In this document: piece after piece, positions 10,815 to 16,777 of the stretch
Position numbering within the stretch: position 1 is the first letter of the stretch
How the letters are laid out: each line of letters begins with the position of its first letter
Assembly (NCBI GenBank): GCA_033442325.1
Contig: JAWQFM010000019.1
Span: 95,046 to 143,652, forward strand
DNA length: 48,607 bases
From: Salpingoeca rosetta
Lineage: Eukaryota; Protista; Choanoflagellata
Reading direction: 5' to 3'
Made by a program: the position numbers and the translations under genes
The notes under the pieces: generated by a model
The model's database searches: none
The model's input: only the letters and a program-made list of their open reading frames with translations
Told to the model about the DNA's origin: nothing

Positions 10815-10887
10815 TGGAGCTGCCGGGTATCGATCCCGGTACCTCTCGCATGCTAAGCGAGCGCTCTACCACTTGAGCTACAGCCCC
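10815..10887 (-). tRNA. tRNA-Ala (anticodon AGC), intronless
   Basis: Reverse complement reads GGGGCTGTAGCTCAAGTGGTAGAGCGCTCGCTTAGCATGCGAGAGGTACCGGGATCGATACCCGGCAGCTCCA: 73 nt, G3:U70 alanine determinant, anticodon loop TT-AGC-AT. Confidence 0.96.
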
Positions 10888-11187: not shown

Positions 11188-14100
11188 ATGAGCTCACCAA
11201 AGTCAATGCAGAGGAAGGCATCCCAACGCAGCCATCGCAAGAAGGTGTTCATTTCGCTGCGTTTTGGGGAGGCCGGCCATGCAGGCAAGCTGCTCCAGCG
11301 AGAGTTGGAGCAGGTGCACGGCCTGGACGTGTTTTTGTGTGACGTCAAGCCTGGTGGCAACATGGAAGAAGAGATCATCACGGCTCTCGCGGTCTGTGAC
11401 TTGGCTGTCATCATGGGCACCAAGACGTACGGCAAGAAGACGCCTTCCACTTTCAGCACTTTCGAGGAGCTGCGGTTCATCACAACTGAGCGCAAGCCAT
11501 TCTTTTTCATCAAAATGTGCGAGCGGCTTGAAGAGTCATTTGCGCGGTTTCATCTCCCCGACTCCATCTCCTTTTTTCAGTGGATCCCTGCTTCAAGGGA
11601 TCCAGAATCCATGTCCCTACCACACGATCTCGCCCCAGCCATCGTGGACAAGCTCACCCACATCAGCACCTCTAGCAGCGCGAAGGGCGGCAAAGGTCAC
11701 TCCTCCGTCATCACACGACAGCTCCCAACGACACTGGACGCTAGCCTGACACAGTGGCTGCAGCGCTACAACATGTTGTCCTCCATGGGGCTGGTGCTTG
11801 AGAAGCGCAACATCACAAGTCTTCACAAGTTGGAGCAGGCAACAGAGGCCATGCGGAATCCGAGAAAGCATGCACTTGCGAAGCGACGACGGCAACAGCA
11901 AGAGCAGCAGGGAATGAAACGAGGAGAGCAGAGAAGTAACCCCAAATCAGAAGGAGGCCTGCAACAGTTACATGAGAGCATGTTGATGAAAGAGAAGGAG
12001 TTGAAGCCAGCCGAAATTGCCAAGTTCCGGCGGGCGTGCAAGGCGAGGACCTGGCACAACAACGAGATGGACAGTGAGGGAATGGTGGAGAGCACTGAGG
12101 GGGTGCGCGGACAAGCAGCTGAGAAGCAGGAAGACGACGAAGAGGAATACCACGAAGAAGAACAGGAAGAGATGCAGCAGCAGCAGCAAGCGAGTGTTGC
12201 GCCGACACCTGTGCGTGAAGGTGTGGCAGATGAAACCCTGTTTCGGGAGTGCCTGCAAAAGGTGAGCGACGAGGACGCCAAGGAAAAGATTCTCAGCATT
12301 TGGAACAACACGTGTGGCGAGGAGGTTCGGTGAGTACAGCCTTGACGGCAAGACATGCTCATGAGCTGAGTTGTTGCGGGAATCTGGGATACTTCTTCGT
12401 GTTGTGTTTCAGCGTTACATTATGTCTGTCAAAGGCACGACCTGACAAAGTGCGTGAGATATTCTGAGTGGTTATGATAGCCAATAATTGCACGACGTGT
12501 GTGATGACCGACGAACGCCAGTTGCACACAACATGCACTCTGACACACACACACATGCATACATACACACGCACACAATCACAATCACAACAACCCAGGC
12601 TTCTTTGGGGAAACAACCTTGGAGATATAGGCGGGAAGGCGCTTGCAGAGGCATTGAAGGTCAACACGACGCTAACAGGCCTCTAGTGAGTTGCTTGCTG
12701 TGGTTGCATGGGTGTGAATGTGTGCTTGTGCGTGCGTGTGTGCGCGCACAGGCGTGTGATTGTGTGGTACTGGCACATTGTGTTGATGCTATGGAGTGCA
12801 CACCTGACACAAGGACGTGGTTGCGGTGATAGGAATGAGCAATTGGTTTGGTTGATGACATTTCGAGCCTGGTGTGCTGTTGTGCGCGATTCACCCCCCC
12901 CCCTTGCACACGCACTTCGCACCATGACACAACCACGCACAGCCTTGAAAACAACGACCTTGGACTTGAAGCGGGAAGAGCGATTGCGGAGGCATTGAAG
13001 TTCAATGCAATGCTGGCAGTACTTGAGTGAGTTGTCTGTTGTGGCTGGGTATGAGTGATTGCGTATGTATGCGCTTGTGTTGCAGGTGCACAGTGTGCTG
13101 TTGATACCGTAGTGTGCTGTGTATTGGCTGGCATGGATGACACCGCATTTTATTTTGTATTCGTGTGCGCTTGCCTGGATGGATAGCACTCGTGGTGTAG
13201 TGGCGTGATAGCGATTGTGCTGTGGTATGTGGTAAATGTTGTGATTCAGTCTTCGTCCTGTGGTCGTTGGATATGGTGTGACAGTGTCTGGAGTCCTATG
13301 CTTCGTACGCTGTTGTAGTCGTTGGACGGACATGGTTCTTTGATTCACGGTGATTTGGTATGCGTCTTTATCAGGTGTGAGATTCACTGAACACTACACA
13401 CATGTACACGCACGCACACGCACACACACACACAAACACGCACACGCACACACACACACACACACACAACACCACCCATGGTAACAACATACAGCCTAAG
13501 CTACAACATCCTTGGACCCGAAGGCGGGAAGGCAATTGCAAAGGCACTGAAGGTCAACACGACGCTAACAACGCTTGAGTGAGTTGTTTGTTTTGGCTCT
13601 GTGTAGATGTGATTCTGTGCGTGTGCGTGCGTGGCATTGTCGTATTTGGACTGTTGATGTGATGTGCTCTGATGTATTGTGTGTTGGGTGATTGTGGTGA
13701 ACTATTTTGAATGCGTACGTGATGTGTGCTGTGAATACATGAACTGCGCGCCACGCGAACACTCTATCCAAACTCACACGAATGCATCCAGCCTGTATAA
13801 CAACGGCGTAGGCTTTGAAGCCGGAATCGCGATTGCAGAGGCTCTGAAGGTCAACACGACGCTTACGGAGCTGGAGTAAGCAAAATTCTGCCGTGGTGTG
13901 GGCATGAGATCGTTGTGTCACGTTCCTGGCGCATGGGTGTTACATACCCATTTGTTGGAATGACGCCGCCTGTGCTTCGTCGTGCAGACGTACATTTCAT
14001 GGCTAACGCCTTCATTCCCCCCCCCCCATCGTTGGTGTTCAACTAATTGCACTTCAACAGTGTTGATGACAACTTCATCCCGGGCAAAATCAAATCAGCC

Positions 14101-16377
14101 ATCAATTCGGCTCTGAGGAGAAACAAGAAACTCGCACCTCGCATGCAAGAGCTGAATGCGCTACTTGAGTACGGCTCCGTACCCCTGTCCACGGCCAAGG
14201 TGTTTGTTTGCGGGCATTTTGGCATCGGCAAGACCACCCTAATCAAGACGCTGCAGTCGTCTCCACACGTCTTCAACACCATGGTGCGCCGCCGTCGCAA
14301 AACATATGACGAGCCCGATCGCCCAGATCAGCGCACGCCCGGCATTGAGATGCACAACTTTGCACTCAAGAGAGGCAGGTCGTCTGGCAGCGTCTCCCTC
14401 ACACCATCGCCCGTCAACGCAGCAGAAGGGAGCGAAGACTCATCCCGTCACGAGACAGCGCTCCCGCCGTGCAAGCTGCGGGTGTATGACTTCGCTGGGC
14501 AGGTGGAGTACCACGTGGTGCACGAGCTACTGTTTGCGGACCACAACGCCGTCTTTGTTGTGTGCGTGGACCTGTCCAAGGACATGGCCAACGTGGAGGA
14601 GTCTGTGCTGTACTGGCTTCGCTTCATCAAGACGCGCCTGCACCAAGCCGTGCACCGTTCACCGCATCCGCCACACGTCTTCATTGTCGGCACGAAGGCA
14701 GACAAGCCACACGAGCACAACACGCTGGTGGAGACAGCAGCAGAAGCTATACCACATGCTTCTGGTGTCTCTTTGCCGCCAATGCAGTTTCCGAGTGGTG
14801 ACACGCTGTTGCAGAGCCGACGACTGCAGGAGTGGTTTGGTGACACGATGCGTATCCATCCACACGTGATCCCCCTCAACTGCCATGACTTGGGCAGTGC
14901 CTGCATGCATCACTTGCGCGATTTGCTTCACGCTACCTGGTTGGAGGTCGTGCAGCAAGACATTCAAGTGCCCAAAGTGGTGGAATTGATTGGCGAGGGG
15001 CTGCAACTGTGCAGGAAAGAACATGATGGGGTATGGCAGCTACAGCGGCTGTTTTCCTTCCTTGTTGGGAACGTGGAGGAGTTGACACATGCCCCAGCCA
15101 TCACGAAGACATTTTCTTGAAGGCGCTCAGGTGTGTGTATGTGTGTGTGTTGTGTGTGTGTGTGTGTGTGTGTGTGCGTTCGCATCTGTTCCTGACTTTG
15201 TTGCTGTGCGAACACCTACTACGACCAATGCTCACCACTATCCCCCATACCCACACCGCCTCCTCATTCAGCTACCTACATGTGCGTGGAGACATTTTGT
15301 GGTTCCAGTCCATCCCATCTCTTGCCGACCATGTCTTCGTCTCCCCTTCCTGGCTGCTGAGCAAAGTAGTTGGCCCAGCGCTGGCACCGGCCCACTTTCC
15401 CGTCCACTTGCGAGCGAGGGAAGGGCGCGTGATGTTCTCGGAGATGCAGCGTGTGTTCGGGCGGGTGATGGATCCAGACCTCGTGGTGGACGTGCTGAGC
15501 AGCATGCTGCTGTGCTATGAAGAGGACGCCGCCCTGCATGAGGGTAATGGTGACCGTGTTTTCATGCTGCCGTCGCGGCTGGAGTGGCGCCCAGAGCGTC
15601 TGTGGGGAGAAGATGGGTCTGTGGAAGTGTTTGCCGGCCGCCGCCTGCAAATTGCGCAACACCACGGGATGATTTTCCCCCCTGGCGTGTTCCCGCGTGT
15701 GCAGTCACGCATCGTGCAGTGTTTGGATTACACCACAAGCCTATGGCAGACAGGGTTCTTTGGCCTGCTGTCTTCTGTTGAGTGCTTGGGCCGTATTGTT
15801 AGCGACACGTGCATTGATCTGTGGGTCCGCTGCCCCGCCACACACAAGGAGCACGCTTGGCTGGCCTTGGACATGGTGAGTTATGATGATGTTGGTGGTG
15901 GTGGTGGTGATGGTGGTGGTGTAGATGTGTATGTGTCGATGTGTCGTGTGTGGGTGAAAAGTAGTTTGCGACACGGCTTTTCTGTGGTGATGCTAAAGTT
16001 CTCACGTTCGTTCACACACACACAACACACACACACAACACACACAACACACACAACACACACAACACACAACACACACACACATACACACATCATGTTA
16101 GATGCTGAGCGAGGTTGAGGAGGAGGTTGAGGGCATCGAGTACGACCATCTCGTGCTGAGCCACGCCCACCTGTCCTCCTACCGGCGCCATCCAGCCGGA
16201 TACCCGCTCCAGGACGTGGAGGACGCCGCCGCCGCCGGTGAAACGCTCATCATTCGCTCGGTGGACGATACATCCAGCCCTGGCAAGAAGGAACACGCGC
16301 GGGACGAGCTGAAGAACCTCCTCCGTGAAGACCTGTTCCTGGCCTACGTAGCTGATGCGTCTGATGTGTGTGTTTGA
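11188..16377 (+). CDS. Roco protein TIR-SAM-like-LRR(RI-type x4-5)-Roc-COR; frameshift in COR (possible pseudogene or assembly error)
   Basis: Exons 11188-12329, 12599-12685, 12943-13026, 13495-13578, 13792-13875, 14061-15130, 15272-15875, 16102-16377. TIR: KVFISLRF...CDLAVIMGTKTY...TFEELRFI. SAM-like: SLTQWLQRYNM...ITSLHKL...LKPAEIAKFRRA. Roc: GHFGIGKTT, RTPGI, VYDFAGQVEY, IVGTKAD. COR: LKALSYLHVRGDILWF, FMLPSRL, FPPGVFPRVQ. Confidence 0.9.
12599..13875 (+). repeat. Tandem exon-intron modules, each exon encoding one ribonuclease-inhibitor/NLRC3-type LRR
   Basis: Exons of 87, 84, 84 and 84 nt, all with phase-2 boundaries. Consensus LxxNxLGxEGGKAIAEALKVNTTLTxL. Confidence 0.9.
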
Positions 16378-16704: not shown

Positions 16705-16777
16705 GGGGCTGTAGCTCAAGTGGTAGAGCGCTCGCTTAGCATGCGAGAGGTACCGGGATCGATACCCGGCAGCTCCA
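16705..16777 (+). tRNA. tRNA-Ala (anticodon AGC), identical to the copy at 10815-10887
   Basis: Same 73-nt sequence GGGGCTGTAGCTCAAGTGG...CGGCAGCTCCA on the + strand. Confidence 0.96.

Follow-up and report, generated by a model that had tools for sequence, protein, structure and literature searches.

A divergent Roco gene with an N-terminal TIR domain and a SAM-like module in the choanoflagellate Salpingoeca rosetta

PTSG_07288, a gene of the choanoflagellate Salpingoeca rosetta, encodes a cytosolic Roco-family protein in which an N-terminal TIR domain and a SAM-like module are followed by an acidic linker, four leucine-rich repeats (LRRs) of the ribonuclease-inhibitor (RI) type, a Roc GTPase and the COR-A/COR-B region; neither a kinase nor a NACHT/NB-ARC domain is part of this order. 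The gene occupies positions 11188-16377 on the plus strand of the stretch of DNA analysed here (the window, 48,607 nucleotides (nt) of contig JAWQFM010000019.1, here C19, positions 95046-143652), and its product of 1102 residues carries the public label "hypothetical protein". We propose, with belief and doubt about evenly balanced, that the PTSG_07288 family is a nucleotide-gated Roco switch with a TIR output that cleaves NAD+ (NADase), of which this particular copy has perhaps been recently inactivated.

Structure of the gene

Two long exons tie the window to the public record, as exon 1 matches residues 1-381 of PTSG_07288, and the Roc exon residues 495-810, at 100% identity. Neither this gene nor any of its paralogues is named in a paper found by our literature search. 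The gene model, which we rebuilt from sequence, has eight exons and seven introns. All seven introns are bounded by GT..AG and most contain (CA)n/(GT)n tracts, and these features, together with the match to S. rosetta records, rule out bacterial contamination or a prokaryotic gene. An initial annotation, made from the letters of the window, had supposed its host to be a unicellular relative of animals, and a choanoflagellate is such a host.

Exon 1 (11188-12329) is an open frame of 380 codons plus 2 nt that holds the motifs VFISLRF, CDLAVIMG and TFEELRF and encodes the TIR domain, the SAM-like module and an acidic, Gln-rich linker. It ends in phase 2 at a GTGAGT donor, the LRR exons are multiples of three, and the Roc exon opens in phase 2 as well, so that the frame is unbroken from the ATG to Roc.

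The TIR domain and its glutamate

The assignment of the N-terminal domain (residues 18-165; 11239-11682) to the TIR fold draws on structure and on sequence. An exhaustive HMMER search with residues 19-165 returned 613 relatives, 359 of them at E<=1e-10, and an alignment of 60 of these homologues was used for both an AlphaFold2 model and the analysis of conservation. The model of residues 19-165 is a beta-alpha, flavodoxin-like domain predicted with high confidence (predicted local distance difference test, pLDDT, ~95). When the model was compared with the PDB by Foldseek, nearly all of the best 50 matches were TIR domains, and the top 50 rows of a VIA-align comparison were all TIR or SEFIR. 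The latter included the TIR domains of RPV1 (Z 14.4, root-mean-square deviation (rmsd) 2.8 A over 138 residues), RUN1 (Z 13.7) and SARM1 (Z 13.4), as well as those of SPARTA and AbTir (Z 13-14). From sequence alone, the family profile matches the TIR domains of Roq1 (E 1.9e-5), its best sequence match in the PDB, and of SARM1 (E 2.6e-3), and NCBIfam adds a weak match to the Thoeris type III protein ThcB4 (E 2e-5). The TIR fold that had been read into this N-terminus is therefore well borne out. Membership in DUF4062/TeTIR was considered and rejected, as the matches to it are weaker than those to TIR_2.

Residue E94, encoded by the GAG codon at 11467-11469, appears from the alignment to sit at the position of the catalytic glutamate of plant TIR domains and SARM1. 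This assignment is made because HMMER aligns the family motif "fEEl" with "CLEEL" of Roq1, placing E94 opposite the second E of the latter, which we take to be the catalytic residue. At least 90% of the 60 homologues retain E94, which lies in the first turn of model helix 91-100, in agreement with the suggestion that this codon is at the alphaC position. Conservation of the whole domain is unusually high, S. rosetta and metagenomic proteins being ~50% identical over it.

The same TIR-like domain also occurs outside Roco proteins (P0002, P0130, P0142, P0073, P0048 and P0117). It is fused to a SecA-DEAD helicase in PTSG_06287 (P0002), while other proteins join it to NPHP3_N plus WD40, at either end, or to a protein kinase, ankyrin repeats or an ectodomain resembling NHL/laminin-G/ephrin-receptor proteins. 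Among these, WD40/NPHP3_N, kinase, SecA-DEAD and receptor-like ectodomains are common partners of immune or conflict effectors. One metagenomic relative adjoins DENN and PDZ genes, which indicates that its contig is eukaryotic. Motif scans with two patterns confirmed no relative in bacterial or archaeal genomes or in viral contigs. Only one full-length relative outside S. rosetta was found, a metagenomic protein, by word-based searches whose limited sensitivity does not exclude other choanoflagellates.

The SAM-like module

C-terminal to the TIR domain, residues 183-289 (11734-12054) are predicted to form a five-helix module. Modelled alone it reaches a pLDDT of 79, and it contains a basic, partly disordered insertion of ~35 residues (residues ~222-260). 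In an exhaustive structural search (VIA) of 48,161 chains, SAM domains filled nearly all of the top rows. The p73 SAM domain came first (rmsd 2.4 A, 61/61 residues) at a Z of 7.4, which is below 8, followed by EphA1, SHIP2, CASKIN2 and tankyrase; the SARM1 SAM domain scored Z 5.7. The match spans the helices on either side of the basic insertion, and shorter TIR-like relatives carry a compact, insertion-free version of the module straight after the TIR domain.

Pfam, Foldseek (PDB) and an ESM-Atlas shape search gave no match for the module, and a language-model search gave weak leads to SAM families (0.75-0.79). The SAM-like module of the initial annotation thus stands in part, upheld by the structural search and unmatched in Pfam and Foldseek. 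On the strength of the model, a SAM fold is likely, and we would expect to be right about two times in three. A two-copy complex prediction for the module scored 0.00 with controls not run, and so is neither support nor counter-evidence.

A divergent LRR-Roc-COR core

The four LRR exons all run from phase 2 to phase 2, and each encodes one RI-type repeat. The first is 87 nt long (12599-12685), and the other three are 84 nt each (12943-13026, 13495-13578 and 13792-13875). Together they make up a family of direct repeats (family D2) with 62-72% identity between units, and the annotated protein reaches 45.9 bits against Pfam LRR_6, the ribonuclease-inhibitor type. The splice between the third and fourth of these exons is seen in a contig of sequencing run X5, whose GT..AG junction 13578/13792 is exactly as modelled.

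Exon 6 (14061-15130) encodes Roc and the start of COR-A. Pfam Roc scores 36.1 bits against a cut-off of 27 bits, and the nucleotide-binding motifs, whose coordinates were checked, are intact: G1 GHFGIGKT (14212-14235), the G2 region (14332-14349), G3 DFAGQ (14488-14502) and G4 TKAD (14692-14703). The switch-I sequence TPGIE is present too. A long low-complexity insertion separates switch I from G3. COR-A and COR-B follow directly in that order, both under their Pfam cut-offs (COR-A E 1e-4 to 6e-4; COR-B 22.7 bits on the annotated protein). Exon 7 (15272-15875) supplies the rest of COR-A and the start of COR-B (E 1e-4 and 0.08, respectively, on this piece), and exon 8 (16102-16377) supplies the end of COR-B and the stop codon, and is conserved in the paralogues. 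A NACHT/NB-ARC core was rejected, as profile searches gave chance matches at the level of the P-loop (NACHT E 0.015 over 19 residues) and the G domain is of the Roc/Ras kind. RI-type LRRs, an intact Roc, a COR behind it and the lack of NACHT/NB-ARC had all been recognised in the initial annotation, and all are recovered here. What that annotation did not make explicit are the number of LRRs, the close paralogues and a 1-nt frame break in COR-A, to which we return below.

In the PTSG_07288 subfamily COR-A scores ~20-25 bits, far lower than the ~60-74 bits of most other Roco loci of the genome, and for this reason the subfamily is a divergent Roco branch.

Paralogues and the coupling of TIR to Roco

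PTSG_07288 is one of many S. rosetta loci at which a TIR domain and a Roco protein are found together. The genome has at least 35 places that match the TIR-like domain. At five loci a COR-A follows this domain on the same strand at a distance of 4-6.5 kb, namely PTSG_07288, PTSG_12838 (C29), PTSG_08667 (C26), and one locus each on C2 and C1. Two further close paralogues, PTSG_12575 (C19b) and a copy on C17, have the same exons wherever the assembly is ungapped. In the C2, C19b and C17 copies (L013, L014 and L015), the LRR arrays or the Roc region are interrupted by runs of N (1.3-5.2 kb). Some contigs are ~95% identical to the Roc-COR part of PTSG_07288 and match neither of the alignable paralogues; they probably derive from the gapped C17 copy.

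The number of LRRs varies among these genes, from four in PTSG_07288 to five or six in PTSG_12575 and more in PTSG_12838. In run X1, one contig (depth 22) goes from position 13633 back to 12727 through 36 other letters, perhaps because the LRR exon units of that sample are not the same in number, or because a paralogue intron is involved.

Roco loci are themselves numerous, with at least 55 COR-A matches in the genome. At 14 or more Roco loci other than those above, COR-A is followed on its own strand by Pfam TIR_2 after 1.0-1.75 kb, in the order Roc-COR-TIR. Examples are C1:990557-992239 (L021:1071-4334, minus strand), C26:19551-21119 and C13:1706318-1707893. In the first of these, COR-A, COR-B and TIR_2 share a single open frame of 1088 residues (one frame was checked). 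In other words, a TIR domain is coupled to ~20 of the Roco loci (at least 55 in all), and the N-terminal TIR-SAM and the C-terminal TIR look like two fusion orientations.

Two tRNA-Ala(AGC) genes flank PTSG_07288 in inverted orientation, at 10815-10887 (minus strand) and 16705-16777 (plus strand), with 91-nt arms that are 95% complementary. Next to the C2 paralogue, too, there is a divergent tRNA-Ala(AGC), ~270 nt 5' of the ATG (L013:8117-8190), and because of this upstream copy the duplicated unit seems to include a tRNA-Ala(AGC) gene. Another close paralogue, P0160 (S. rosetta, 1299 residues), is fused in its public model to a TsaD (tRNA threonylcarbamoyltransferase) domain, and this fusion is probably a merger of adjacent genes by gene prediction.

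A proposed switch and its alternatives

We hypothesize that an input at the LRR or Roc-COR part of the protein would alter its state of self-association, that this would bring TIR domains together and lead to cleavage of NAD+, and that cell-autonomous signalling or death would result, possibly in defence. The proposal is made by analogy with the dimer/monomer cycle of Roco proteins, the SAM-driven assembly of the TIR domains of SARM1 (a glutamate-dependent NADase), and the induced proximity of plant TNLs (TIR-type nucleotide-binding LRR receptors).

A number of observations weigh against such a switch, beginning with the domains themselves. Pfam TIR_2 gives PTSG_07288 17.1 bits (E 0.0078), under the 28-bit cut-off, and among the relatives, which score 17 to 29.8 bits, P0117 alone passes it. 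The SAM assignment comes from fold alone and at a middling Z. There are just four LRRs in PTSG_07288, and those of PTSG_12575 hardly differ from each other, a pattern that speaks for recent duplication of exons more than for diversification driven by a ligand. The gene is expressed at a low level: two RNA sequencing runs from 2026 gave ~20 reads each, many of them 95-99% identical and hence from paralogues, and some intronic. In every read pair the first mate maps to the minus strand, the pattern that a stranded library gives for a transcript of the plus strand. The junction of exons 1 and 2 is spanned by no read or contig among those recovered. The frame is broken by 1 nt within COR-A in the reference sequence, and an insertion in later data places the TIR domain out of frame with the ATG from codon 18. 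NADase activity, oligomerisation and an immune role are properties that we infer for the PTSG_07288 family.

The two frame lesions bear on the strongest alternative, which is that PTSG_07288 is a pseudogene or null allele, so that the architecture is real for the family and the full-length protein has been lost in this copy. We rate this somewhat short of an even chance. The frame that carries Roc meets a stop at 15118-15120, and the reading goes on in a different frame ("HEDIFLKAL", then exon 7). On C2 and C19 (C19b) the paralogues have 1 nt more between ~15070 and 15101, and in run X5 a contig that resembles a paralogue carries one G more after 15101; the break lies at 15085-15101. The NCBI model keeps the frame by a splice from 15008 to 15272, at the price of ~41 residues of COR-A, and this junction has no supporting read among those recovered. 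When Pfam was applied to PTSG_12575, the COR-A segment that is cut from the NCBI model of PTSG_07288 was not recognised, a result that does not distinguish a frameshift from a real intron. The second lesion is an 8-nt insertion, AAGAAGAG, after 11238, present in locus-specific contigs of runs X1 and X5 (two later studies, 0 mismatches) and absent from the reference and from three close paralogues. The scarcity of RNA reads, part of them intronic, fits inactivation as well.

Against a pseudogene stand the substitution patterns. The ratio of nonsynonymous to synonymous divergence (dN/dS) relative to the paralogues is 0.11-0.23 for TIR, 0.20 for Roc, 0.13-0.29 for COR and 0.24-0.39 for the SAM-like module, at a dS of 0.26-0.56. 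These values show that the TIR, Roc and COR parts have been under purifying selection, and that constraint has held over most of the period since duplication. In-frame stops within the exons are lacking. Both lesions, moreover, are short indels in low-complexity sequence that could be errors of assembly or contigs, or polymorphisms between strains, and the 1-nt deletion rests on the reference, since the DNA-like run X1 has zero coverage at 15048-15231. PTSG_07288 may be a family member that was inactivated recently. A further difference between the data sets lies in intron 5, where the poly-C tract at 14017 is 3 bases shorter in the X1 and X5 contigs than in the reference, and thus the reference and the later data differ at homopolymers.

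Alternatively, the protein could be a signalling Roco with a non-enzymatic adaptor TIR, like the scaffold TIR domains of animal TLR pathways, serving ordinary signalling (bacterial cues, colony development) and not NAD+-depleting immunity. Scaffold TIR domains are common in animals, Roco proteins have cytoskeletal, trafficking and developmental roles in Dictyostelium and animals (PMC6337361), a total of at least 55 COR-A loci would fit a general expansion of signalling genes, and the LRRs are few and poorly diversified. We nevertheless think this unlikely, because a near-invariant glutamate within a highly conserved motif, in a domain that retains ~50% identity in distant relatives, is typical of an enzyme, and because the best matches in sequence and structure (Roq1, RUN1/RPV1, SARM1, SPARTA, AbTir) are of the NADase type.

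That TIR-SAM (exon 1) and LRR-Roc-COR are two genes merged only by gene prediction would agree with the unseen junction of exons 1 and 2, but is highly improbable given that exon 1 is stop-free up to its GTGAGT donor with a phase-2 end that fits the LRR and Roc exons, that five to seven paralogous loci, the most distant at 31-40% identity, repeat the order and strand, and that the NCBI models of four paralogues join both parts.

If the switch reading is correct for the family, TIR NADase effectors would here be gated by a Ras-like Roc-COR switch in place of a STAND ATPase, and the sister group of animals would possess Roc-COR-gated TIR receptors in a species, S. rosetta, that is open to gene editing. 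The recurrence of TIR-Roco proteins in two orientations would link LRRK2-type GTPase biochemistry to NAD+-based immunity. Going further, we speculate, though we consider it doubtful, that S. rosetta has built a repertoire of intracellular receptors (20 genes or more) on Roc-COR and not on STAND ATPases, with TIR NADases at either end and single-repeat, phase-2 LRR exons that can be shuffled. PTSG_07288 itself, being apparently damaged, is of lower value in this respect, and the intact PTSG_12575, PTSG_12838 or PTSG_08667 would make better experimental subjects.

Comparison with known systems

The core of PTSG_07288 is that of a simple Roco protein. The Chlorobium tepidum Roco and human MFHAS1/MASL1 likewise have LRRs directly before a Roc with G1-G4, followed by COR-A/COR-B and no kinase, and Roco GTPases pass through a nucleotide-dependent dimer/monomer cycle (PMC6337361, PMC11052575). 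PTSG_07288 differs from these simple LRR-Roc-COR proteins in its N-terminal TIR domain and SAM-like module, its four RI-type LRRs, the insertion in Roc and a very divergent COR.

TIR domains have been noted in silico on Roco proteins before. One study lists TIR among the domains of ROC-COR proteins of Trichoplax adhaerens (PMC4104024). Of the TIR proteins of Aplysia californica, two that are TLR-like, two that are MyD88-like and one other contain ROC-COR (PMC9334734), and a TPR-ROCO-TIR protein of Chondrus crispus has been described along with TIR-Roco fusions in other organisms (PMC11378527). The proteins are uncharacterised, and an immune role has been suggested for them (PMC4104024; PMC9334734; PMC11378527). 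They resemble PTSG_07288 in carrying TIR and Roc-COR on one polypeptide. The TIR domain of PTSG_07288, on the other hand, is N-terminal, is divergent enough to fall below the Pfam threshold, and precedes a SAM-like module, and its host is a choanoflagellate. A survey of choanoflagellate TIR proteins reported kinase, Ank, Arm and SH2 as partners and a SARM1 with the catalytic glutamate, and did not list Roc (PMC6040629), and the main review of Roco proteins does not mention TIR (PMC6337361).

Roco proteins have also been proposed as immune receptors in their own right. The LRR-ROCO genes of brown algae, which encode one LRR per 72-nt phase-2 exon, are candidates of this kind (PMC3341825, PMC11378527). 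They share with PTSG_07288 the single-LRR, phase-2 exons open to duplication and shuffling and an LRR number that varies between paralogues; they differ in exon length (72 nt versus 84-87 nt), in LRR subtype, in having many more repeats, and in lacking TIR and SAM. In bacterial conflict systems, Roc-COR GTPases are found in place of STAND NTPases (PMC7159879). A TIR on a Roco, and a Roco as an analogue of NLR immune receptors, are consequently known concepts, and PTSG_07288 was already present in public annotation. The claim of novelty made at the outset is narrowed by these published TIR-Roco fusions and LRR-Roco immune candidates, and is weakened further by the frame-breaking indels of a copy that does contain the architecture. 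What is new is the arrangement of an N-terminal, glutamate-containing TIR domain with a SAM-like module, and the extent to which TIR is coupled to Roco in S. rosetta, of which we found no description.

SARM1 offers a parallel for the effector half, as it pairs a catalytic-glutamate TIR domain with SAM domains, much as PTSG_07288 pairs a TIR domain that has a glutamate at that position with a probable SAM fold. Compared with the ARM-SAM-SAM-TIR order of SARM1, that of PTSG_07288 is reversed, with a single SAM-like module that contains a large insertion, no ARM domain, and LRR-Roc-COR as its regulatory part. PTSG_07288 is not an orthologue of SARM1.

Plant TNLs and TEP1 (TeTIR/DUF4062-NACHT-WD40) offer a parallel for the whole, since they also combine an N-terminal TIR-type effector with an NTP-dependent switch and repeats. 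The TIR domain of PTSG_07288 is nearer to TIR_2 than to DUF4062 (compare TEP1, 10.64898/2026.09.21.753143), and on reading it we did not notice an 'RWG', for which no dedicated motif check was run. Recent preprints on TIR-like NADases of the DUF4062/TeTIR kind, as in TEP1, mention neither Roco proteins nor choanoflagellates. The switch of plant TNLs and TEP1 is a STAND ATPase, whereas that of PTSG_07288 is a Ras-like Roc-COR GTPase, and the LRRs, which come after the switch in plant TNLs, come before it in PTSG_07288.

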